Below, one piece after another: positions 6,758 through 60,800 of a DNA stretch of 64,000 nt. Under the pieces are notes generated by a model. It saw only the letters and a list, made by a program, of their open reading frames with translations. It was not told where the DNA came from and made no database searches. Both the position numbers and the translations under genes were made by a program. The stretch is from contig CM060732.1 in assembly GCA_030704615.1 (NCBI GenBank), positions 74,586,001 through 74,650,000 of the forward strand, in the 5' to 3' direction. This DNA comes from Takakia lepidozioides. Taxonomy: Eukaryota > Plantae > Bryophyta. Numbering within the stretch: position 1 is the stretch's first letter; the number at the start of each line of letters is the position of its first letter.

Positions 6758-9700
6758 TTCCAAAGTGCCCTCCAAAATTCATTTGTAAACTTTGGATCGC
6801 GGTCCGAGACAATATCCTTCGGGAGTCCATGATGTTTGAAGACGTGGGCGAAGTAAAGTCGCCCCGTGCGCCGTTGCCATCTCCTTGGTGGGGATGAAAT
6901 GACCCATTTTACTGAACCTATCCACCACCACCATGATTGCATCGAATTCTTTTGACAGCGGCATAGCAGTCATAAAATCCATCGAGACACTTTCCCAAGA
7001 CCCCTCTGGAATCAGCAAGGGTTGTAACAGCCCCGTTTGTACTCGCTCTGGTTAAATTTGTTGGCATGTGGTGCATGTCTTGACATACTCCTCGGCCTCC
7101 TCCCTCAGTTTGGGCCAGAAATACTCTTTCTTCAAGAGTGCCGTGGTGTGCTTGGCTCCACCGTGGCCCGCAAGCGGGCCATCATGACATTCCTTCAAGA
7201 GACTATCACCGATCCCTCCCTTCGGCACATTGAGGCATTTTTGCTTGTACCGGAGCAGTCCATTTTGCAAGTGGAACTGCAATTTAACCCCCATCCTCAA
7301 GTCTGGCATCACGGACTTCGCCATCTCATCCTTCCGGTAAGCCTTCCAGATCTTTCTTTGGAGCGCCGTCTCGCCCCTGTACACCAACATGAGCTGCTGG
7401 CATTGGCCACCACATTGTCCCATCCCGGTTTGTACTGGATATCCACGTCGAACACCGCCAAAGTGTCTTGCCACCTAAGTTGTTTTGGGGACAACTTAGG
7501 TTGCGTGGCAAAATACTTCACCGTGACATTGTCCGTGAACACCTTCACCGGGTTGGAACCAACATAGTGGTGCCAAAGCTCAAGGCAATGCACCACCGCC
7601 TTAATTTCTTACTCGTGCGTAGACCACCATCGCTCCACTTCATTCAGTTTCTTACTTTTGTAAGCCACTGAACGTCCATCCTGCATGAGCCCACCCCCAA
7701 TTGCGAAGTCCGACGTATCTGTATGAATCTCAAATGGACGATCGAACTCCGGGATTTTTAGGACTGGAGCTTCCACCATCTGCTGCTTCAACTTGGCAAA
7801 AGCTTGGCCACAAAAAGTATTCCATACCCATACCTTGGACTTACACAGAAGGTCCGATAGCGGCCCCGCAATCTTGGCGAAATTTCTCATATACTTTCGG
7901 TAATAGGAGGCGAGTCCTAGGAAGGATCGCATTCCCGGGACCGAAGTCGGAGGCTCCTAGTCCAAGATCGCTCTCACCTTTTTGTCATCCATTTTGATCC
8001 CATCTTGTGTAATCACATGCCCTAGGAACTCTTATTTTGTGACCCCGAATTCGCACTTTGAAGCTTTGGCATACAACTTTCCTTTCCACAATTTCTGGAA
8101 CACCCTTTTTAGGTGCTCCAGGTGCTCTTCCTTTGTTTTCGAGTACACCAAGATGTCGTCGATGTACACGATCACAAAGTCATCCAACCACTCCTGGAAA
8201 AGGCTGTTCATTAGCGTGCTAAAGGTCACGGGTGCGTTGGTGAGCCCAAATATGAACCATATCTTGTCCTGCACGCGGTCTTCTCCTCATCTCCTTCCGC
8301 CAGTCGGATTTGATGGTAGCCGGAGCGCAAATCGATCCGGCTGAAATACTTCTCTCCTGCCAATCGATCGAAGAGGTCGTCGATCCTTGGCAAAGGGTAC
8401 CGGTTTTTGATAGTCACCTTATTTAGAGCCCTATAATCGACACACATCCGCAGCATCCCATCCTTCTTGTCTGCGAATAGCACCGGGGCTCCGTAGGGTG
8501 ACTTACTCGGCCGGATGTACCCCTTTGACATTAAATCCTTGAGCTGAGCCTTCAGCTCGACCAACTCTCTGTGGCTCAACCGGTAGGGCGCCTTGGTAGG
8601 CGGCTCCGATCCCGGTATCACCTCAATCTTGTGGTCAACTCCTCTACGCGGTGGCAAACCGCTTGGTAATTCCTCCGGCATCACATCCTGGTATTTCTCC
8701 AAAATCCCCTTGATCCAATCTGGGCTCGGCTCCCTATCGCCTTCTCCCTTCACTTGTCTTACGTAAAGCAAAAACTGGGGCTCGTGTGGCTCCTCCACAG
8801 CCCACTCCTTTGTTGACAGCAGGTTTATTCGCCCTCCCACTGGTTTGGGCGTTTCCGACACTCGTAAAACTTCGCCACCATTCCCACACGATAGTGTGAC
8901 TATTCTCTTGCGGCCATCTATGACCGCTCCGGATTTGCTCAAAAAGGTCATCCCTAAAATGAGATCCACGCCATCGATCTTGCAGATGGTGAAGTTCTCA
9001 CGTCCCTGGCTGAACGCACTTCAATAGAGGCCCCCACATCACTTGTTGGGAGCCCCAACTTTCATGCCGTTGCCGGTGTCATGAAGGAGTGCGACGCTCC
9101 TATGTCCACCAATAACGACACGTTAGTTCCGGAAATTATCCCATTCACGAACATTAACTGACTTCTTTTACGCAAGGCGCCAGTTTCCTGATACAACTCA
9201 CAGGAGTAGTTGCATACCTTGCAAGTCTTGGCGACCACCGCCTCCACCAAGCGGCTGATGGAATCTTCGGACAGCTCCGTGGCCGCCCGAGTCATGTTCA
9301 ATTTTCGGGGTTTCGTGTACTTCTTGGCCATGTGCCTGGGCTCCCCGCAATTAAAGCATACTCCATCGAATGTCGCCTTATGTCCGCCATAAGCCGCCGC
9401 ACCTAATTTTCTTTTCGGAGCACCAGGTGCCACCTTGACGTGTGAAGGCCCTCCCTTCGATTTCCACGTGCCATTATCACCGTGTGACCTATCCCACTTC
9501 TTTTCCGGTCGGAAGGAGTCACCCTCCCGGCGGGTCTTCTTGTGGTTCAGCTCTGTACGACCTTGTCTTTCGCCCCTAGGGACATCCGAGAAACATTCAG
9601 CCTTTTCAATTGCCTCGTTCAAAATCTTAGGTGGCTTCTCCTCCAACTTCCGTCTGGCCCATGGGGCCAGTCCCGCCACAAAGTTGAAGACCATTTTTGG

Positions 9701-11016
9701 TTCCGCCATATCCGCGACTTCAAGCAACAACACATTGAAAGCCTAAACATATCCCTGAATGTCATCCGTTTGCTTCAAATTCCTCATCTTGTCCCGGGCG
9801 AGCCAGGACGCGTTGAGGGGAACAAATTGTCTTTTCATAAGTTCCTTGAACCCACTCCAGTTCAAGGTTTCCGGGTTTGGACCTTGGTCGTGAAGGCGTT
9901 TCTGCCACCATTGTTGGGCATAGCCCCTCAAATAGGTGGGAGCCACTTCCACCCGATCCTCGTCACTCAACTTGGCCGCCCGGAAGTACTGCTCTAGCTC
10001 CAAGAGCCAGGTGTTGAGTGCCTTCCAATTTTGGACGCCCTCGAAGGTGCCGGGTTCCTTAGGCTTCACCTTAAACTTCGCCTTAGTGGAAGTGGCATTA
10101 GCCACCTTCAACACGTCTTTCAACGTCCCGCCAAACTGCGCCAACAACCCTTCTCAAAAAGCTGTTGGCATGGGAGACATCTGTTGGTATGGCGGAGCCT
10201 CCGGGAGGTCCTCGGGCTCCGACTCCCCAGATTCCTCCCGTTCTTGAGCGGCCTCCCTTTCAAAAGCATGAATCGCCTCCTCAAATTGCCGCTTCGGTGA
10301 CACATCGCCCCTATCGGGCTCACCAGGATCATCATCTTTCGGGCCGTTCCGCTTTCGCTTTGGCTTGCCTGACCCCATGATGAGACCGATCTCAAGGACG
10401 ATTGCGTACTCAACTCTAAGCTCTGATACCAAGTGTCGCGCACTTCCCCCTTTGCTCCTCCACAAGACCCTCTCTCAATTTGGGCCTAGTGGAAAATTTC
10501 CTTTGGTTGTTGGCAGTCCGGAACAGCTCCCCACACCTTGGGCGCTTTCCGGCTCGCACGCTTACTCTCTAGTTTTTGGTCACCAACGGGCTTGCACCGT
10601 TCTCAGGGTTACTACTCCCTATATATACTTCTGTGACTGTCCGCAGGGGTTTCACAAACAACCCAGTCATTTTATGGCGAACCACCACGAAAACCCTCGA
10701 TTCCCGGTGATGAGTCGCGGTGAGTCTTGGCCCACCCACCACGGCCCCATTGGACCGTGATGAGTCCCAAGACTCCCCACGACTCCCACCACAAGGTCTT
10801 CGCCCCATGGTGAGTCCTATGCCACCCCCACTAAGACCCACTAAGCTACCACCACCCCTCGTGGAACCACCCCCTAGTGAGCGCCTCCGCCTCCTTGAGT
10901 GCTTTGGGCACTCAAAGGTGCTTCGGCCCCCGTACCTATTGTTGCCACTGCCCCCACCACAGGGGCAGCCCCTCTTGTGTCCCGACCCCCTGCCCTCAAG
11001 GCAAAGGGCCGCGACA
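6758..11016 (-). mobile_element. Ty3/gypsy family B element (5' LTR, PBS, gag, PR, RT, RH, partial IN), chromovirus-like, degenerate
   Basis: LTR 11016-10434 (TG...CA); PBS TGGTATCAGAGC 10431-10420; gag knuckle CFNCGEPRH; LVDIGASHSF; CVDYRALN...DLRSGYHQ...YIDD; integrase SMDF...VVVDRFSK...SDRD broken at about 6758. Confidence 0.93.
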
Positions 11017-14000
11017 GTACCACTGAATACTCTGGCTCTTACTATGGCTCCACCCCACCTATTCATATTCTGCGTGGCACTATCCAAGGTGATACCCTAA
11101 ATCCATACCTCTTCATTATCTTTCTAGAACCACTACTGCGTTGGTTAGCTTGCGGCAATCTAGGATACCGCTACAAAACCTCACCCAATGAAATAACAGC
11201 TGCCGCCTATGCTGACGACTTAGCCATCCTTGCTCACAAACCCCAGCACCTAAACCGCCAAGTTGATAAACTATCCCGTTTTAACCAATGGTCCGGCATG
11301 GACTCTCAGTCTCCACAAATGCGCAGTCACAGCAGCCACCCATCACAGCAAATTCACCCGAGCCGTGATGGACTCTCAATGTAAACTGAATATCCATTAC
11401 CAGAATAGCCCCTTCCATGTCTTAGGCCCCGATGAACCTTACACATACCTGGGCATTCAGCTCGTCCCTTCACTCAAGTGGCACATCCAAAAAGCCACCA
11501 CACTCACCAAACTAGCTAACAAGAGTCTAGCTCTACTTCAATCTCCTATCCCAATTAGACCAAAACTAGCGATCACCCAATTGGTGCTCAAACCACAAGT
11601 CCAGTACGCCTTTCACGCTGCTCCATTCTTTCTCCCTACCATTCTCCCTGGTGTGTGCTTGATAAACATATCATTCTTACCAAACGAATATGTGGGCTTC
11701 CAACTAGCACCCCAAATGCCCTTACCCAACTCCCCGCGGATAGTTATGGTATCGGCTCTAGCCCCTTCATTACTTCTTATGCCCGCACGCTCGGTACCCA
11801 ACTTCTAGAAGCCCTTAACGACCTTGGGCGTCTTGGACTCATCTACCAAGGTATCGTCAGACACCTCGCCTCAAAATTTAATGGCCTCCACTCCCTCCCA
11901 ATCCTTTACCCGCAGTCATGCCGTCACTCCCCAACCGCACGCTCCTTACTCATTCTACGACAAATGCGTATTAGCCTGCAAATGGACCTGCCTGGCTATC
12001 CTAACACGGTGTCTTCACTAGAAGTTGCCTGGACCTCCAGCCCTTTTCTCCCCCAATTTGAAGCAATCCACCCCAGTCAGAAAACACCTATACTCAAGTA
12101 CTTTAAAGCTCGACACATCACTAACCTCACCCAACTCACCACTGCCACCGGTACCAAGTTAATAACCCCCCGTGAATACACTCTGAAATACTCTAGAGCC
12201 ACTACTAAGACCTGCCGATTCCTTCTATACCTTCGTACCTTATTCTGCTACCCCTCCACCTCATGCATCCTAGACTGTGACCTCCCATGCCGTCTCTTCC
12301 CACATAACACACAAGACTTGCTCCCTGAGTTCAGGTCAGCCCCGGCCCCCTCTATTCTCCATAAACTCCGATCCTCTCGCACAACCATACATCAAGAACC
12401 TACTACCCATGACTCTTCCTCCCAGCTTACCCATGATACCACTTCTCTACCACAACTCAGCGGCCACCAACAATCACCACCCTCTCCTACATGGTCTTCC
12501 CCACCGACACACACCCTACCCTCATCCACCCCTACCACACCACACTCCCACAACGCTACCACACCATCCCCTTCCCACACTAATCTCAACAACTCCAACG
12601 CTTTTATCATTGAAGCTATACTAGGGATTAAAACCCAGACTTCCACGGATTCATTTGGTGTGACTTGTATAGACACATACTACCTATGCAAATGGGCGGG
12701 CTTCTCAAGTGAAGACAATACCTGGCAAATTGAGGACGACCTCTTTGGTTCGCATGATGACTGTGACCCTGACCATAACCTGGCCCTTCTTATTGCTTTC
12801 TACAAGCGTACTAATACCAACTACCTCTCACACTTATACCAACAACATGTATCCCAAAAACTCAGACACTCAACATGTCTCTCGTCCGCTCCCCGCCGCC
12901 AACATTCTAGTTGACATCACAGAATGCAACCCCGACAAGGATATCCTTCATGACTCACCCATCATATGCACCGGCCCCCAAAAGTCCGCTATTCACTCTA
13001 ACAATGGTCAATTCCTTGGGCTCGTCCCTAACGACAGGATTGCCTGGTTATAGGCCCGGTACTCTTCCCACTCCTCCAACACTAGTCATTTACACCCACC
13101 TCTCCAAGACTTCGCTACCGAAATAAGTTGGCTCTTGGAGCGCTACCTCCGTGACACCCCCCACAAAAAACCCAGATCCGAAACCAAACTCTCTCAAGCT
13201 ATGTGTTATTTCCCACGATATCCTAACCCTTCTCATTACATCCTTCCAACTCACCCACTCATACTACTCTAGTCCACTCACTTGTCCCATAGACATCCAA
13301 TCATTCGCCAGTCCCAATCCCTGAGACTGCATCTTCGGGGCCTCTGGTTATGCCACCCAACACTCTTGGTCTGGCAGCCCCCCCCCCCGGGACCCCACAC
13401 CCATGAAGCTTTACAATGGGCTCGCTTTGCAACCCACACTTCCCCAACATCACTCACTATCCTTATACTCACTCACCAGCAATCACCTGATAACCCCCAT
13501 CCTTAACTGCAACTACCACCGGGCACCACACTACTAGCATCACTTGAACCAAGCCAGCATATATACTCAAAGAACCCACCCTTCCCTAAATATCTTATGC
13601 ATGAGGAGCCCACCATTACTCTTCTTCTACATATCCAACACGCATCCGCCCCTCCCATCCCACATACCATGCACGCCCACCTCGTCCACACACTCACGCG
13701 TACTCACGGCCTCATGGTCACCACCACCCTACCCGTCGTATCCCTTCCCCCACCTCACAGCTCTCATACCCAGGTATCTCAGTCACTTCCCATAGTCCAG
13801 CTGAGCAAATCCTGGATTAAAGCACCTCCCCGTCCCCTTCCTCTCCCCCCACCGATTCCAGTCACCTCACCGCCATATCATAACCATATGCCCCTCAAAT
13901 ACCCGCCACTTCATTCCCACTATACTGACGGTTCCCACACTCGACCCAACGCCGGAGACGACGTTTACCACGCTGCCTCAAGAATAGGCACATCCGCCCG

Positions 14001-15507
14001 ACTCCCTGGGCCTGCCACCATCCTCCGTGCAGAACTTATGGCCATTTACGTGGCCATCTCCCAGCTACCCTCATTCTCCCCTCCCCATTATATTTTCACA
14101 GACAGTCTAACATCACTCTTTCTTATTCGTAACCACCTAGCATGCCTCTCCTCACACCACCACCACCCAGACCGCAACCTCATTGATGCCATAACCAAAG
14201 GTGCCATAGACTTGGACCAACCAATTCACTTCCTGAAAAACCGCTCACATACAGGTATTGCTGGCAATGAGGAAGCTGACCTCCTCGCTCAAACTGGCGC
14301 TTTAGAGCCCTATATCGACCCAGCCGACGATCCTATCCACATTGTGCACACCCACCCATTTTGGCTCATACACTCCATCCCAAACCCTCCAGACCATAAG
14401 CAAATACATAACCTTCTTACCACCCTTAATAAGGAGGCCACTCAACAAGCTAGGGCATCTATGAGTCACACCAAAATCCACATTCAAGAATGGACTCTTT
14501 CCACCATCCTGCATCATAAGCTATCCAACAAATTTGGCACTCCAAAGCCGTGACTGATGCTCAAATCAAACAAACACTCAAGTTCCGATATGCCCAATAT
14601 ATGGGCCACCAACGTAAACACGTCTTCTGGCCCCGCCAATTTCCCTCACCAAACTGCCATTTATGCCTGCACAACCACCAGGTTCGAGACACTTGGCCCC
14701 ACCTCTTGAGTCAATGTACCCACCCGGTCATCCATGGTAACATGTCATAACCATCCTGTTTGGCACATCCACAAACTCCTTATGCAACGGTCCGGAACCC
14801 GCTGGTTTTCACTTGTTAACGCAGGCACCCACCAAGGCAAACCTCTAGACCATACTGTTCCACATTGGTTGCTCCCATGCCTATGTCCACGCTCTCCATG
14901 CACCTGCCTCGCCATGCTATGCCCTGATATCTTGCTTGTTCACGGCCTGCCCATCAATACCCAGCCGCCTACTTCCCCTTCATCACATATCACCATCTAC
15001 TTTATAGAATTCACATACTGTCACGATCGTTATCCTGCCCCCTCCATCTTGGAAAACGGCAAAAATATGCACCACTTATCACTGCTCTCCGTCGCAGGGG
15101 GTGGAACACAGGCCCCCTCTCTGTTATCACGGCCGACACTCGAGGGGGTATCCACAATGCTAGCATAACGGCGCTACACGACAAATCTCCCCTATCCACA
15201 AATGCTTTAAGACAATTCACCTCACAACCCTCCGTTCTCTCACAGCCATCATTACCAACAAACGGAAGCTAGAATCCAACCCACTTTCTGTTCCTTAGCC
15301 CTCCTCAACACCTTAGGTACCCATGGGTACCTAAGGGTACCCTTATGGGTACCCACCGTACCCCTTGGTACCTCCACCCCCCGGTTCCGGTGTCCACTGG
15401 ACACCTAGATTACTTATAGGGCCCACCCCCGAAAGGGGGCAGTAGCCGCAAGGCGAAGTGGCTCTTAGTTACGCCGGCTTAGGCTGGAGTCTTCTCTCTC
15501 TCTCTCT
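11017..15507 (+). mobile_element. Dualen/RandI-like RLE non-LTR retrotransposon, copy 1 (RT, chromodomain, PCIF1-like MTase fold, RNase H, CCHC, RLE), frameshifted
   Basis: RT GTIQGDTLNPYLF...YADDL...YTYLG; chromodomain 12603-12743; MTase-like 13202-13640; RNase H about 13915-14300; CCHC and RLE about 14655-15270; structured 3' UTR and (CT)n tail. The 5' part is cut off by gypsy B. Confidence 0.85.
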
Positions 15508-16500
15508 ACATGTCCACAAGCGCAGTCTCCAAATATATCTCGAAAGCCTCCCTGCCACATCCATGTTGAGCACACCCTGCGATCATGGTGTTCCATGATA
15601 CTCTACCTCGTTTAGCCATATTGTCAAAAGCTTGAAGCGCATCCTTTATGCTCCCACATTTTGCATACATGTCCACAAGCGCAGTCTCCAAATTTATTTA
15701 GCATGCAATTCCAGATTTAATGATGTCAGCATGGACCTCTTTGCCCTTCTCCAAGGCTCCTAGGCTGGCACATGCATTGATAACGCAAGTGAATGCGACC
15801 CTGTTGGGCGTTAGCCCTTTCTTTTGCATTTGTTCATACATCTCAATAGCCTCCCTGCCATACTCATGCAGAGCATATGCTGCAATCATGGTCCTCCATG
15901 AAACCACATCATGTTGTGTCATATTGTCAAACACTAGATGAGCATCCTTTATGCCCCTGCATTTTGCATACATGTCAACAAGGGTATTCTCCAGGATAGC
16001 ATCTGGCACGATTCTAGATTTGTTTATGTCATCATGGCCATGCCTCCCTTATTCCAGAGCTCTGAGGCGCATGCATTGAGAATACAAGTGAATGTGACCC
16101 TGTCAGGCGTCACCCCATCCTGTTGCATTTTCTCATAGATCTTGAAAGCTTCCAACAGCGTCCCCATGCTGAGCATATCCTGCTATCAATGAACTCCACG
16201 AGACCACATCTCGTTTAGCACATGCTATCGAACATTTGACGCGCCTTTTTCATGCTGCCACATTTTGCATACATGTCGATAAGGCTATTATCCAAATTGA
16301 TATAGGGTGCAATTTTAGCTTTCATGGTGTCAACATGCACCTCTTTGCCCCCTTTTCCAGGGCTCCTAGGCTGGAACACGCATTGAGAACACAAACAAAC
16401 GTGATTGTGTTGGGTCTCACCCCTGCTTGTTGCATTTGCATGTACATCTGGAAAGCCTCCCTCTACGCTGACACTGATCACATATCCACCCAACGAGCTA
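15508..16500 (-). pseudogene. PLS-class PPR protein pseudogene fragment
   Basis: Repeated P-L-S motifs (LVDMYAKCGSI..A..VFDNM..DVVSW; TF.C.NACASLGALEKGKEVH) with stops and frameshifts; truncated at the LINE tail. Confidence 0.9.
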
Positions 16501-56739: not shown

Positions 56740-57839
56740 TGTGAAGATACTTCGTGCGGCAAGCAGACTAACAGAGGCTCTACAAACTCTAAACCAATGA
56801 GGCATTTCAGTAGATTCAGATACGTATGTCTGTCTCTTGCTTAAGTGCATGAAGATGGAAGGTCTGGAAGCTAGAAAGCAGGTGCACACCCCCATTACCC
56901 AAAGTGGATTCACGCCAAATGTTTTTCTACTCAACACCCTTGTCAACATGTATGTTAAGTGCGGGAGCATCATGGATGCCCACCAAGTGTTCAACAGAAT
57001 GCCTCAACGATCTTTGATCACGTAGAATATAATGTTGGCAGGATTTACCCTAGTAATGCATGTGCCAGCCTGGGAACCGTGGAAAAGGGCAAAAAAGTAC
57101 ATGCATACATCATCAAAGCTGGGATTATACCAGATTTTATTCTCGAGACTGCCTTTGTGGACATGTATGCAAAGTGTGGCAGCCTAAAGGATGTGCGTCA
57201 AGTGTTTGACAATATGGCTCAACAAGATGTTGGCTCTTGGAGTGCAATGTCAACAGGATATGCTCAGCATGGGTATAATAAGCTATAGACATATATAGGC
57301 TATATCATGGATGCTCACCAAGTGTTCAACATAATGCCTCAACCATCTTTGTTCACATGGAACATAATGGCTATGAGCAAATGATAAGGGAAGGTGTCAA
57401 GCCCAACAGTTGTGTTCATTTGCATTCTCAATATGTGTTCCAGTCTTGTCGCCCTATTTTCACGGTGTTTACAGGCAGTCAAGGCAAAAAGTATAGAACA
57501 GCTTTGGCAAGAATTCATGTCAGATACTTCACAGTGGTGGGACAACTGGGCTGATAAGGTGAGGCTCTACTTGCCAGCCAATAACGTACAGTTCCTATGA
57601 TAAAATGACAGTGGTTGTTTTCTGATTGAAGCTGGTATGATGCACCATGACTTTAGTGCTTGTGGTTCTTTGAAAATGACCCAAGCATTCAAGTTAGTTC
57701 TGTGGCCTCTTTATTGGCATTATTCTTGTGGAGTGGAGCTTTAGTGGTCGAAGCCCGGTATGTGTGCTTGTTGTCCGATCTTGTCAAAATGAAAAGCCTA
57801 GCAGAGGGAAAGCAAGTGCATACCCACATTATCCAAAGC
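56740..57839 (+). pseudogene. PLS-class PPR pseudogene fragments with an embedded PDF-motif exon
   Basis: NTLVNMYVKCGSIMDAHQVFNRM, ACASLGTVEKGKKVH, VDMYAKCGSL with stops; cut by the gypsy LTR at 57840. Confidence 0.88.
57475..57558 (+). other. N-terminal half of an OSB-type PDF motif as an AG/GT-bounded exon
   Basis: TTACAG|AVKAKSIEQLWQEFMSDTSQWWDNWADK|GTGAG matches LW..F..P..WWDNR..K. Confidence 0.7.
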
Positions 57840-60800
57840 TGTCGTGGCCCTTTGCCTTGAGGGTAGGGGGTCGGGACACAAAAGGGGCTTCCCCTGTGGT
57901 GGGGGCAATGGCAACAATAGATACGGGGGCTCGAGCACCCTTGAGTGCCCAAGGCACTCAAGGAGGCAGAGGCGCTCACTAGGTGGAGCCCCGCACACCG
58001 GGTTGCGGTGGGGGTGGTTCCACAAGGGGTGGTGGTAGCTTAGTGGGTCTTAGTGGGGGTGATATAGGACTCACCATGGGGCGGAAACCTTGTGGTGGGA
58101 GTCGTGAGGAGTCTTGGGACTCATCACGGCCCAATGGGGCCGTGGTGGGTGGGCCAACACTCACCGCGACTCATCACCGGGAATCGAGGGTTTTCATGGT
58201 GGTTCGCCATAAAATGAGTGGGTTGTTTGTAAAACCCCCGCGGACAGTCGTAGAAGTATATATAGGGAGTAGTAACCCCGAGAACGGTGCAAGCCTGTTG
58301 GTGACCAAAAACTAGTGAGTAAGCGTGCAAGCCGGAAAGCGACCAAGGCGTGGGGAGTTGTTCCGGACTGCCATCGACCAAAGGGAATTTCCACTTGGCC
58401 CAAATTGAGAGAGGGTCTCGTGGAGGAGTAAAGAGGGACTGTTATGCCCTGGTGAGCAGCCGAAGCTCCGAGTTGGCCCGGGCGGCCAGTTTGGGAATTA
58501 TGCACGCGCATCAAAGCGAGTAACTATGACTTGAAGGGGAGCTTACCGAAGTGAGGTGCGCGACACTTGGTATCAGAGCTTAGAGTTTAGTACGTGATCG
58601 TCCTTGAGATCGCCTCATCATGGGGTCGAGCAAGCCAAAGTGGAACGGCCTGAAAGATGATGATCCTGGTGAGCCCGATGGGGGCAACGTGTCACCGAAG
58701 TGGCAATTTGAGGAGGCGATTCATGCTTTTGAAAGCGAGGTCGCTCAAGAACGGGAGGAATCTGGGGAGTCGGAGCCCGAAGACTTCCCGGAGGCTCCGC
58801 CAGACCAACAGATGTCTCCCATGCCAGCAGCCTGTTGGGAAGGGTTGTTGGCGCAGTTTGGCGGGACGTTGAAAGACGTGTTGAAGGCAGCTAATGTCAC
58901 TTCCACTAAGACAAAGTTTAAGGTGAAGCCTAAGGATCGGGTGGAAGTGGCTCCCACCTATTTGAGGGGCTATGCTCGACAATGGTGGCAGAAACGCCTT
59001 CACGACCAAGGTCCAAACCCAAAAACCTTGAGCTGGAGTAGGTTCAGGAACTTATGAAGAGATAGTTTGTGCCCCTCAACGCGTCCTGGCTCGCCCGAGA
59101 CAAGATGAGGAATTTGAAGCAAACGGATGACATTCGGGGATATGTTCAGGTTTTCAATGTGCTGTTGCTCGAAGTCGCGGACATGGCAGAACCAGAAATG
59201 GTCTTCAACTTTCTGGCGTGACAAGCCCCATGGCGGAAGTTGGAGGAGAAGCCACCTAAGACTTTGAACGAGGCAATTGAGAGGGCTGAATATTTCTCGA
59301 ATGTCCCTAGGGGTGTAGGTCAAATGCAACTGTCGAGGGAAACACGGAAGACATGCAAAACAAGACAAATGATGTTAGGGTTATGGGATGTTGGGAGATG
59401 AAATTGCAATTTTTCATTCAGGCAGGATGAAATTACTTTTTTGTCAGGAAACACTCTGTCAAGTTATTTTACCACTAGTGTGAAACTAGCTAAGAAATAG
59501 CTAGCTTTTACATATTGACATTTGGGACAGGTGGATGACGGCTAAAGTGATGTTGGGGAATGAAAAATGGGAATGAAATAATGATTTTTTTTCATTGCAG
59601 GTGGATGACGAGATGGAATGGGGAGTGAACATGAGGATGAAATGACGATTTCTCATTACCAGGTGGAAGATCATCAAACAGTTGGCATGGATAAGAGGGA
59701 GTAGCAGTGAAGACAAAATACAGCAGGCTATTTATTAAAGTGATAAATTACCAGTCAGTAATGTAGTAATGGGGCTGGGTCCACGTAGCTTAGTATATAT
59801 TTTTGCACTATGAGTCAAAGATGGTCACATGGTGCAGAGGGGGATAACACTCGGCGGCCATTAGAAATCTAGAAATCTTTGTCTATTATATTTCATGTCA
59901 TAGTTAGTCATGCAGCCAGGTTCACGTGAAAGTGACGGCGTGCATTAAATAACTTAGGAGCTTGCTTTACCTATATAAGCAAGGATGCAAGACATACGAG
60001 CTCCCTCTGTTTGTATGCACTGGATAGAAGAAGGAAGTGGGAGTTATGCAAGAAAGATGTCAAGCAAGCTATGCTTTTATCAAAGGTTGATCAAATGAAT
60101 GGTGTGATGTTTGAAGAGTGTAGTATTGGAGTTGAATGAGTTCTTTTCCTGCAGATGTAGTCATGACCACAAGCAATCAGTAGTATGATCCTAGAGTAAA
60201 CATAGGCTTGGACAAAATGATGGAGTTTAGCATCTATTTACTGCGTCACAAGATAGAAGATCGTGGACAAGCGACTTGATAGAAGAAGGATATAGCAAAC
60301 AATATCTGGAAAGTAGTTGGACCAAAAGTCTTTGGATTCCAAGGGGCACATATCTACATGCAATTCTGACTGAGGGAAGCTATGGTGGCCAGAACTGTGA
60401 ACAATGAAAGTGGACCATGGGGAAGTGGACTGGGAAAGTGTCAGTTGAAGGCCAATGAATCCAACCAATGATGATGTCTCTCTTGAACAACGACACAGTA
60501 GATGTCTTGCAAGTAGTTGTCTTGTATACCCCTATCTTTTGGCTTTCTCTTCCGCTACAGCTATAAAGGTAGGTGGTGATCTAACGGGTGAAGTGGCATG
60601 GGTGTTAGGCCCCTCTTTTTTTTACTTACAAGGGCGAAAGACAAGGCCGTACGGAGCTGAACCACAAGAAGACCCGGCGGGAGGGTGACTCCTTCTGACC
60701 GGAAAAGAAGTGGAATAGGCAACGCGGCGACAATGGCACGTGGAAATCGAAGGGAGGGCCTTCACACGTCAAGGCGGCACCCGATTCTCCAAAAAGAAAA

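Follow-up and report, generated by a model that had tools for sequence, protein, structure and literature searches.

A broken PCIF1-like methyltransferase domain in a Dualen/RandI-like LINE of Takakia lepidozioides

A stretch of 64,000 nt of the Takakia lepidozioides genome (GCA_030704615.1, contig CM060732.1:74,586,001-74,650,000, forward strand; hereafter the window, whose positions serve as coordinates throughout) contains the decayed remains of a Dualen/RandI-like long interspersed nuclear element (LINE), in which a segment related to the cap methyltransferase PCIF1/CAPAM lies between a chromodomain and an RNase H domain. We consider it likely, with a probability of about 0.85, that this segment is a dead copy of a domain from the PCIF1/CAPAM clade of Rossmann-fold N6-adenine methyltransferases, which is a standard module of Dualen-type LINEs and is probably non-catalytic in land plants. 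The family to which the segment belongs is PCIF1-like by three independent routes, namely, Pfam, a profile search of the PDB and predicted structure. The window copy itself is a dead remnant without a function of its own.

The domain remnant in the window

When the 64-kb window, in its full set of 2997 six-frame pieces, was screened with a profile of 40 intact homologous domain sequences (A1), only four significant matches were obtained. These are colinear and lie at 13054-13200 (E-value = 6.4e-9, profile positions 11-58), 13127-13321 (6e-12, 48-93), 13325-13378 (6e-3, 96-113) and 13390-13503 (1.2e-5, 122-157). A read-through of 13036-13650, with X inserted at each break, scored 155.9 bits against A1 (E-value = 1.9e-46, profile positions 4-202). 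The colinear matches and the read-through score thus identify the segment as a true but broken member of the family, with the following features:

13036-13650, plus strand: pseudogenised PCIF1-clade methyltransferase-like domain, about 200 amino acids, five lesions (read-through against A1; fold match via relatives)
13051-13053, plus strand: in-frame TAG replacing the Trp of the WLW motif that is conserved in relatives (three-frame reading, family alignment)
~13195-13205, plus strand: frameshift from frame 1 to frame 2 within the N-terminal helical part of the domain (profile positions 11-47 in frame 1 up to 13200, positions 48-93 in frame 2)
13259-13285, plus strand: motif I equivalent SYYSSPLTC, counterpart of CFASPLNC in PCIF1, with Asn changed to Thr (profile-to-PCIF1 and family alignments)
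13322-13324, plus strand: in-frame TGA directly before the conserved D-x-I-F-G motif (reading frames, profile alignment)
13378-13388, plus strand: run of 11 C where the reading shifts from frame 2 into frame 1 and where catalytic motif IV would lie (NPPF in PCIF1, HPHN in the family)
13504-13506, plus strand: in-frame TAA (reading frames, profile alignment)

An earlier note on this DNA, which had claimed a PCIF1-like fold here, was right in saying that the region is not one open reading frame (ORF). Frame 2 spans 13202-13378 and frame 1 runs from 13375, and the frames are broken at the TGA, the poly-C run and the TAA; both peptides quoted in the note match plus-strand frames 2 and 1 exactly, and the position of the catalytic motif does fall on the poly-C frameshift. 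The start of the domain had been set at 13202, whereas A1 places it at ~13036, about 165 bases earlier, and instead of two lesions five were found, the TAG, the frameshift at ~13195-13205 and the TAA included. The proposed colinearity with the PCIF1 core holds for the overall order but not for one motif: FASPNP (13307-13321), which had been equated with FASPLN, corresponds to CSAFPD of PCIF1, immediately before the conserved D-x-x-F-G-S-x-G, because the profile alignments put CFASPLNC of PCIF1 on SYYSSPLTC. A literal NPPF at 13573-13584 (frame 1, SKNPPFPKY) was likewise rejected as the catalytic motif; it lies downstream of motif IV and aligns with the non-conserved ASPGLPKY of the relative P0001.

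The length of the poly-C run differs among runs of the same sample, with 11 C in the window and in the X1 and X2 contigs and 12 C in one X4 contig. Because 12 C would put both sides in one frame, this lesion may reflect a polymorphism or the way in which the homopolymer length was called; the other four are undisputed. With its 5' truncation, and with three in-frame stops and two frameshifts in the domain, the window copy cannot make the domain.

Directly before the domain, the segment at 12915-13035 (ITECNPDKD...GLVPNDR) resembles by eye the pre-domain segment of the algal relative P0024 (ELNPDLD...GLLTPDR), and may represent a further conserved element of the module.

Intact relatives and the PCIF1 clade

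A length-restricted search with 13507-14550 gave no homologs at an E-value of 0.001. An unrestricted HMMER search with the same open frame gave relatives (P0001, P0002, P0009 and P0024) in which the segment precedes RNase H without interruption, and a search with residues 1-200 of P0009 gave 108 homologs, most of which carry PF12237 in precomputed annotation. When relatives were scanned with Pfam, 17 of the proteins exceeded the gathering score of PF12237 (PCIF1; 31.1 bits): P0022 (51.7), P0024 (51.3), P0194 (48.1), P0202 (47.8), P0069 (47.2), P0266 (43.7), P0255 (43.7), P0246 (42.0), P0009 (39.6), P0187 (38.4), P0185 (38.1), P0249 (38.1), P0171 (38.0), P0160 (37.5), P0230 (37.5), P0265 (37.2) and P0183 (35.3).

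In a search of the PDB with A1, PCIF1 alone was significant (zebrafish 6irx, E-value = 4e-9; human 6irv, 2.5e-7), the next sequence having an E-value of 0.96. The AlphaFold model of P0202:305-545 (pLDDT 85.4, pTM 0.83) was compared with known structures by two programs. The top six Foldseek matches were all PCIF1/CAPAM (E-value = 4e-8 to 1e-5, TM 0.64), followed by M.EcoKI (2.5e-3), and VIA-align placed human PCIF1 440-668 first (Z 15.7, root-mean-square deviation 3.7 A over 205 residues) and RlmJ next (Z 8.4). That M.EcoKI comes next after PCIF1 fits the literature, in which PCIF1 has been assigned to the M.EcoKI/M.TaqI group (PMC4738411). Profile, Foldseek and VIA-align thus all lead to PCIF1, and the fold that the earlier note had suspected within the LINE is supported by the relatives. 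The note had named the lack of a significant profile or structure match as grounds for refutation, and matches of both kinds were obtained. No WW domain was found in Pfam scans of the window ORFs or the relatives, and we therefore regard the LINE domain as a member of the PCIF1 clade and not as a PCIF1 ortholog.

Language-model features placed 40 PCIF1_WW clusters among the 100 nearest Atlas clusters. The nearest of these are dominated by members from Nucleocytoviricota and haptophytes, and short PCIF1-like proteins seem common in giant viruses.

One protein of the plant LINE family with PCIF1_WW and RNase_H matches (P0208, 533 aa) appears at NCBI under an archaeal metagenome-assembled genome, 'Candidatus Nitrosocosmicus sp.', with the label of an RNase H family protein. 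It is probably a eukaryotic contig that was mis-binned into the archaeal assembly.

Domain order in the LINE lineage

The window copy is truncated inside the reverse transcriptase (RT), and its domain order is RT remnant, chromodomain, PCIF1-like domain, RNase H, CCHC finger and restriction-like endonuclease. Apart from the PCIF1-like domain, the recognizable parts are:

11017-15507, plus strand: decayed 5'-truncated retrotransposon without long terminal repeats (non-LTR), a Dualen/RandI-like LINE with restriction-like endonuclease (Pfam matches, three-frame reading)
11067-11300, plus strand: RT remnant including the YADD motif region (PF00078 RVT_1, E-value = 2.8e-8, residues 57-134 of ORF 10899-11381)
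12603-12749, plus strand: chromodomain (PF00385 Chromo, E-value = 4.1e-7, 30.2 bits with a cut-off of 25.1, residues 317-365 of ORF 11655-12911)
13921-14301, plus strand: RNase H domain (PF00075, E-value = 1.6e-9, 38.5 bits, residues 109-235 of ORF 13597-14550)
14553-15165, plus strand: CCHC finger and restriction-like endonuclease module (alignment A2 with C-termini of intact relatives)

RT and RNase H follow each other on one strand (Pfam matches RVT_1 and RNase_H), as in Dualen/RandI. In alignment A2, which joins window 14553-15165 with the intact relatives, the conserved positions are C-x2-C...H...C, RHN, RPD, E and K. A sequence-only PDB search with the C-terminal module gave no endonuclease match, and R2 was found later by fold search: with the AlphaFold model of residues 440-708 of P0002 (pLDDT 80), the top seven Foldseek matches were R2 retrotransposon proteins (E-value = 1.8e-6 to 1.7e-3). 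The 3' limit of the element was set by alignment with a second copy, which ends at 15499.

Among the 150 best relatives by RNase H, about 27 have the PCIF1-like domain, which lies just upstream of RNase H wherever coordinates were compared. P0022 has RVT_1, PCIF1_WW and RNase_H in that order. The distant relative P0135 (4210 aa) consists of a weak Josephin-like match, an apurinic/apyrimidinic endonuclease (APE; Exo_endo_phos, E-value = 2.8e-11), RVT_1, a PHD finger, the PCIF1-like domain and RNase H; in P0081, APE was not detected. A PHD finger likewise precedes the PCIF1-like domain in P0101. The slot before the PCIF1-like domain is thus occupied by a chromodomain in the window copy and by a PHD finger in these two long algal-type relatives, which suggests that the chromatin-reader slot has been swapped between the two kinds of domain. 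No Pfam chromodomain was found above threshold in the relatives, although most of those from land plants can be aligned with this region at about 30% identity.

The PCIF1-like domain is a regular module of the single polyprotein in a Dualen/RandI-type LINE lineage of green algae and land plants and not an accident of this locus. Its place is constant, behind RT and a chromatin reader and directly ahead of RNase H, the CCHC finger and the restriction-like endonuclease. The module of chromatin reader, PCIF1-like domain and RNase H is old and widespread in LINEs of this type.

Catalytic motifs and sequence constraint

The earlier note had left the choice between enzyme and inactive scaffold to the motifs of intact copies, among which a sequence of the form [NDS]PP[YF] was to be sought. 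NPP[FYW] occurs at motif IV in none of the 136 domain-bearing proteins. Among those without a gap at the motif, HPHN is found in 61 and HPHT in 14. HPHN is the land-plant consensus, and land-plant copies also show HPHT and variants. The land-plant forms (HPHN/HPHT) lack both the Asn and the aromatic residue, and algal relatives have NPEY, NPQY or HPAA. At motif I, algal relatives have FASPLN or FASPLD and land-plant copies have YFSSPVTC; in SYYSSPLTC of the window, S-P-L is kept and the Asn is lost.

Constraint was measured as mean column identity among 13 land-plant members that are less than 80% identical to each other. The values are 0.39-0.67 for the PCIF1-like domain, 0.26-0.42 for the linker and 0.48-0.68 for RNase H. 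Within the domain, the block with HPHN ranks highest (0.67). Judged by column identity, the PCIF1-like domain, and the HPHN loop in particular, is as conserved as RNase H.

Possible role and origin of the domain

The motif state of the intact copies favors the scaffold over the enzyme in land plants, and we consider the land-plant domain to be probably a constrained, non-catalytic module for binding or connection between RT and RNase H. It would no longer methylate but would bind nucleic acid or act as a structural 'connection', for instance by gripping the template RNA at its 5' or cap-proximal end, or the RNA:DNA hybrid. A similar role was suggested for the PCIF1-clade domain of DIRS1 elements, which is held to be inactive (PMC4738411). 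The algal NPEY or NPQY forms may still be active.

Several points weigh against our interpretation of the window domain. Pieces of the window (13151-13321, 13282-13503, 13507-13596 and 13544-13792) gave no match to Pfam or, by phmmer, to the PDB at E-values up to 10, so far as the pieces were searched singly, and the copy was assigned via relatives that are only about 40% identical to it. These intact relatives come from metagenome assemblies without assigned hosts. APE, the defining feature of Dualen, would lie upstream of the point where the window copy is truncated. Loss of activity is deduced from motifs only; the conserved HPHN loop could equally mean that the pocket is still in use, and His at the first position of motif IV is tolerated in some N6-adenine methyltransferases.

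As to origin alone, and compatibly with a non-catalytic function, the LINE domain could have been passed between retrotransposon classes, in the same lineage as the methyltransferase-like domain of DIRS1, and not have been captured from a host PCIF1. This is a tentative proposal that we hold to be somewhat doubtful. The LINE has the order RT, methyltransferase-like domain, RNase H, which differs from the order RT, RNase H, methyltransferase-like domain that Poulter and Goodwin reportedly gave for DIRS1 in 2005. Also against the proposal, no match to Pfam Dam (PF05869) was found at E-values up to 1 in the members scanned (P0001, P0002, P0009 and P0024), the sole trace of Dam being a weak Atlas lead (score 0.81) to a cluster with Dam in 14% of its members. 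It is favored by the lack, in the LINE domain, of the WW domain of cellular PCIF1, by the assignment of the DIRS1 domain to the PCIF1 clade, as an inactive member (Iyer, Zhang and Aravind 2016, PMC4738411), and by the repeated transfers of adenine-methyltransferase domains between retrotransposon classes that are described in a 2026 preprint (10.64898/2026.05.21.726589).

On the functional side, the alternative to a non-catalytic module is that intact copies, those of land plants included, are active S-adenosylmethionine-dependent N6-adenine methyltransferases with a non-canonical loop (HPHN or NPEY). Such an enzyme would methylate the capped RNA of the element, in the manner of N6,2'-O-dimethyladenosine (m6Am), or its complementary DNA (cDNA) or target DNA, giving N6-methyladenine (6mA), and would thereby make the transcript more stable or label new insertions. 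An enzyme would fit the fact that the HPHN loop is conserved above all other blocks, and likewise the Asn, aromatic residue and FASPLN that are kept by algal relatives, the confident prediction of the fold including its cofactor-binding half, and the neighboring chromatin readers (chromo, PHD), which would suit an enzyme that acts on chromatin; the 2026 preprint, moreover, associates adenine methyltransferases encoded by retrotransposons with higher levels of 6mA and of expression (10.64898/2026.05.21.726589). However, with NPP[FYW] in none of the 136 members, and with land-plant copies missing the FASPLN Asn as well as the Asn and the aromatic residue at motif IV, activity seems quite improbable to us. 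Mutations of NPPF lower PCIF1 activity (PMC6318281), insect Pcif1, in which the motif is mutated, shows no activity in vitro but still functions in the nucleus (PMC10158991), and the PCIF1-clade domain of DIRS1 was judged inactive on the same grounds (PMC4738411). A claim centered on algae, that a functional PCIF1-like N6-adenine methyltransferase is encoded beside a chromatin reader (PHD finger or chromodomain) in green-algal Dualen-type LINEs and perhaps in those of some land-plant lineages, is in our judgment unlikely.

The LINE sense strand is C-rich and strongly G-poor at 10600-15400, with a GC skew of -0.3 to -0.69 that is strongest at 12200-12600, and its proteins have a high content of Pro, His, Thr, Ser and Leu. 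Because intact relatives have the same amino-acid bias, it looks like a trait of the family and not like decay of the window copy. That the resemblance to PCIF1 is a chance product of this composition, as the skew, the unmatched window pieces and the mistaken FASPNP might suggest, can be dismissed, since it is refuted by the colinear A1 matches, down to 6e-12 with nothing comparable elsewhere in the six-frame translation, by the read-through, by the 108 intact homologs and by the Pfam, PDB, Foldseek and VIA-align matches to PCIF1.

Neighborhood of the element

The segment 5' of the LINE, from 10500 to about 11017, is a different repeat, which recurs at 57839-58384 (88%) and 1-373 (92%). The 5' truncation point of the LINE therefore abuts another repeat family. 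On the minus strand at 9062-10147, directly 5' of the LINE, a Ty3-type gag (Retrotrans_gag, E-value = 3e-10) is accompanied by a zinc-knuckle/protease reading frame.

Directly 3' of the LINE, the minus strand at 15500-16500 carries fragments of a pentatricopeptide repeat (PPR) gene (PPR_2, E-value = 6e-19), which are broken by stops and frame changes and are typical of a land plant. Short direct repeats are also present on this side, linking 15533-15598 with 15836-15901 and 15507-15538 with 15666-15697.

A second 5'-truncated copy of the LINE family lies at 6757-5075 on the minus strand, abuts a Ty3-like integrase reading frame, and shows 70% DNA identity and 62% protein identity to 13893-15499. 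It is the sole second copy, and no other copy of the PCIF1-like domain was found in the window, because this copy begins just upstream of RNase H. None of the RNA runs checked contains the stretch.

Novelty and implications

PCIF1, the PCIF1-clade domain of DIRS1 and the Dam-like domains of DIRS and LTR elements were already known, and the link of a PCIF1-like domain to LINEs is apparently new. No published description of a PCIF1 or PF12237 domain in a LINE or Dualen element was found in full-text literature searches, which covered Kojima and Fujiwara 2005 through the papers that cite it; automatic Pfam annotation already flags PF12237 in database proteins of this LINE family.

The usual toolkit of LINEs is small, consisting of an RNA-binding protein, an endonuclease, RT and sometimes RNase H. 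Here, in a LINE lineage that spans green algae and land plants, a PCIF1-type methyltransferase fold is maintained under constraint between RT and RNase H and beside a chromatin reader. LINEs thereby become the third class of retrotransposons, after DIRS1 and DAM-LTR elements, with an adenine-methyltransferase fold. The interest lies in this family-level architecture and in the question of activity, and not in the dead copy of the window. The catalytic loops form a natural series from the near-canonical NPEY to the degenerate HPHN, which makes it testable whether the domain writes a mark or binds RNA or its cap. If some members were working enzymes, the LINE would write m6Am on its capped template RNA, or 6mA on cDNA or at the insertion site, so that the RNA would be stabilized or the new copy made to resemble active chromatin, and this would be the first nucleic-acid modification enzyme encoded by a LINE. 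For genome annotation, such stretches of plant LINEs are to be treated as PCIF1-like pseudo-domains and not as methyltransferase genes of the host.

Comparison with known systems

PCIF1/CAPAM is the cap-specific mRNA (2'-O-methyladenosine-N6) methyltransferase (PF12237; PDB 6IRV, 6IRW and 6IRX-6IS0). The LINE domain shares with it the Rossmann methyltransferase fold (Z 15.7), the profile match (4e-9) and a motif skeleton of F-x-S-P-L, D-x-x-F-G-S-x-G, W/S-G-x-x-x-x-(N/H)-P and A-x-x-(H/W)-A, followed by a hydrophobic strand. Unlike PCIF1, it has no WW domain, is inserted in a retrotransposon polyprotein between RT and RNase H, and corresponds to no more of the catalytic region of PCIF1 than roughly its C-terminal 230 residues. 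NPPF is replaced by HPHN/HPHT in land plants and by NPEY, NPQY or HPAx in algae, and land-plant copies no longer have the Asn of FASPLN.

The window LINE and Dualen/RandI elements alike combine RT, RNase H, CCHC and a restriction-like endonuclease in one polyprotein. The Dualen domain list that Kojima and Fujiwara gave in 2005 is said to contain no PCIF1-like domain. Published Dualen lists name a cysteine protease, APE, RT, RNase H, CCHC and a restriction-like endonuclease and, for an element from a cryptophyte, SET (Lescot et al. 2016, PMC5029228); the layout is also given in PMC4640811, and Kojima and Fujiwara 2005 is represented here by what is cited from it in PMC4640811, PMC5029228 and PMC9977147. 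Within that scope, the published lists include no PCIF1-like domain, chromodomain or PHD finger, unlike the lineage of the window LINE. In P0135, the weak Josephin-like protease match and the APE upstream of RT reproduce the published Dualen layout, to which a PHD finger and the PCIF1-like domain are added. In Chlamydomonas, activity of a Dualen LINE has been documented in mutation-accumulation lines (PMC9977147).

DIRS1-type tyrosine-recombinase elements carry a methyltransferase-like domain in the PCIF1 clade, in which catalytic and substrate-binding residues are substituted; it is probably inactive and was proposed to bind the transcript of the element or to mimic PCIF1 (PMC4738411). The LINE and DIRS1, the latter compared by description only, therefore both have a PCIF1-clade domain with substituted catalytic residues in a retrotransposon polyprotein. 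The LINE differs in having a restriction-like endonuclease and not a tyrosine recombinase, and its domain precedes RNase H and is paired with a chromodomain or a PHD finger.

In the preprint of Fernandez-Moreno et al. (2026), DIRS and Ty3-like LTR elements carry a prokaryote-like Dam with preserved catalytic pockets, and LINEs appear only as an ambiguous placement of a Euglena RT (10.64898/2026.05.21.726589). The LINE domain differs from the Dam domains of these elements in matching PF12237 and not Pfam Dam, and in its degenerate catalytic motif. The two systems are alike, however, in that an adenine-methyltransferase domain is encoded by a retrotransposon, and the Dam-carrying elements, like the LINE of the window, sometimes have a chromodomain.

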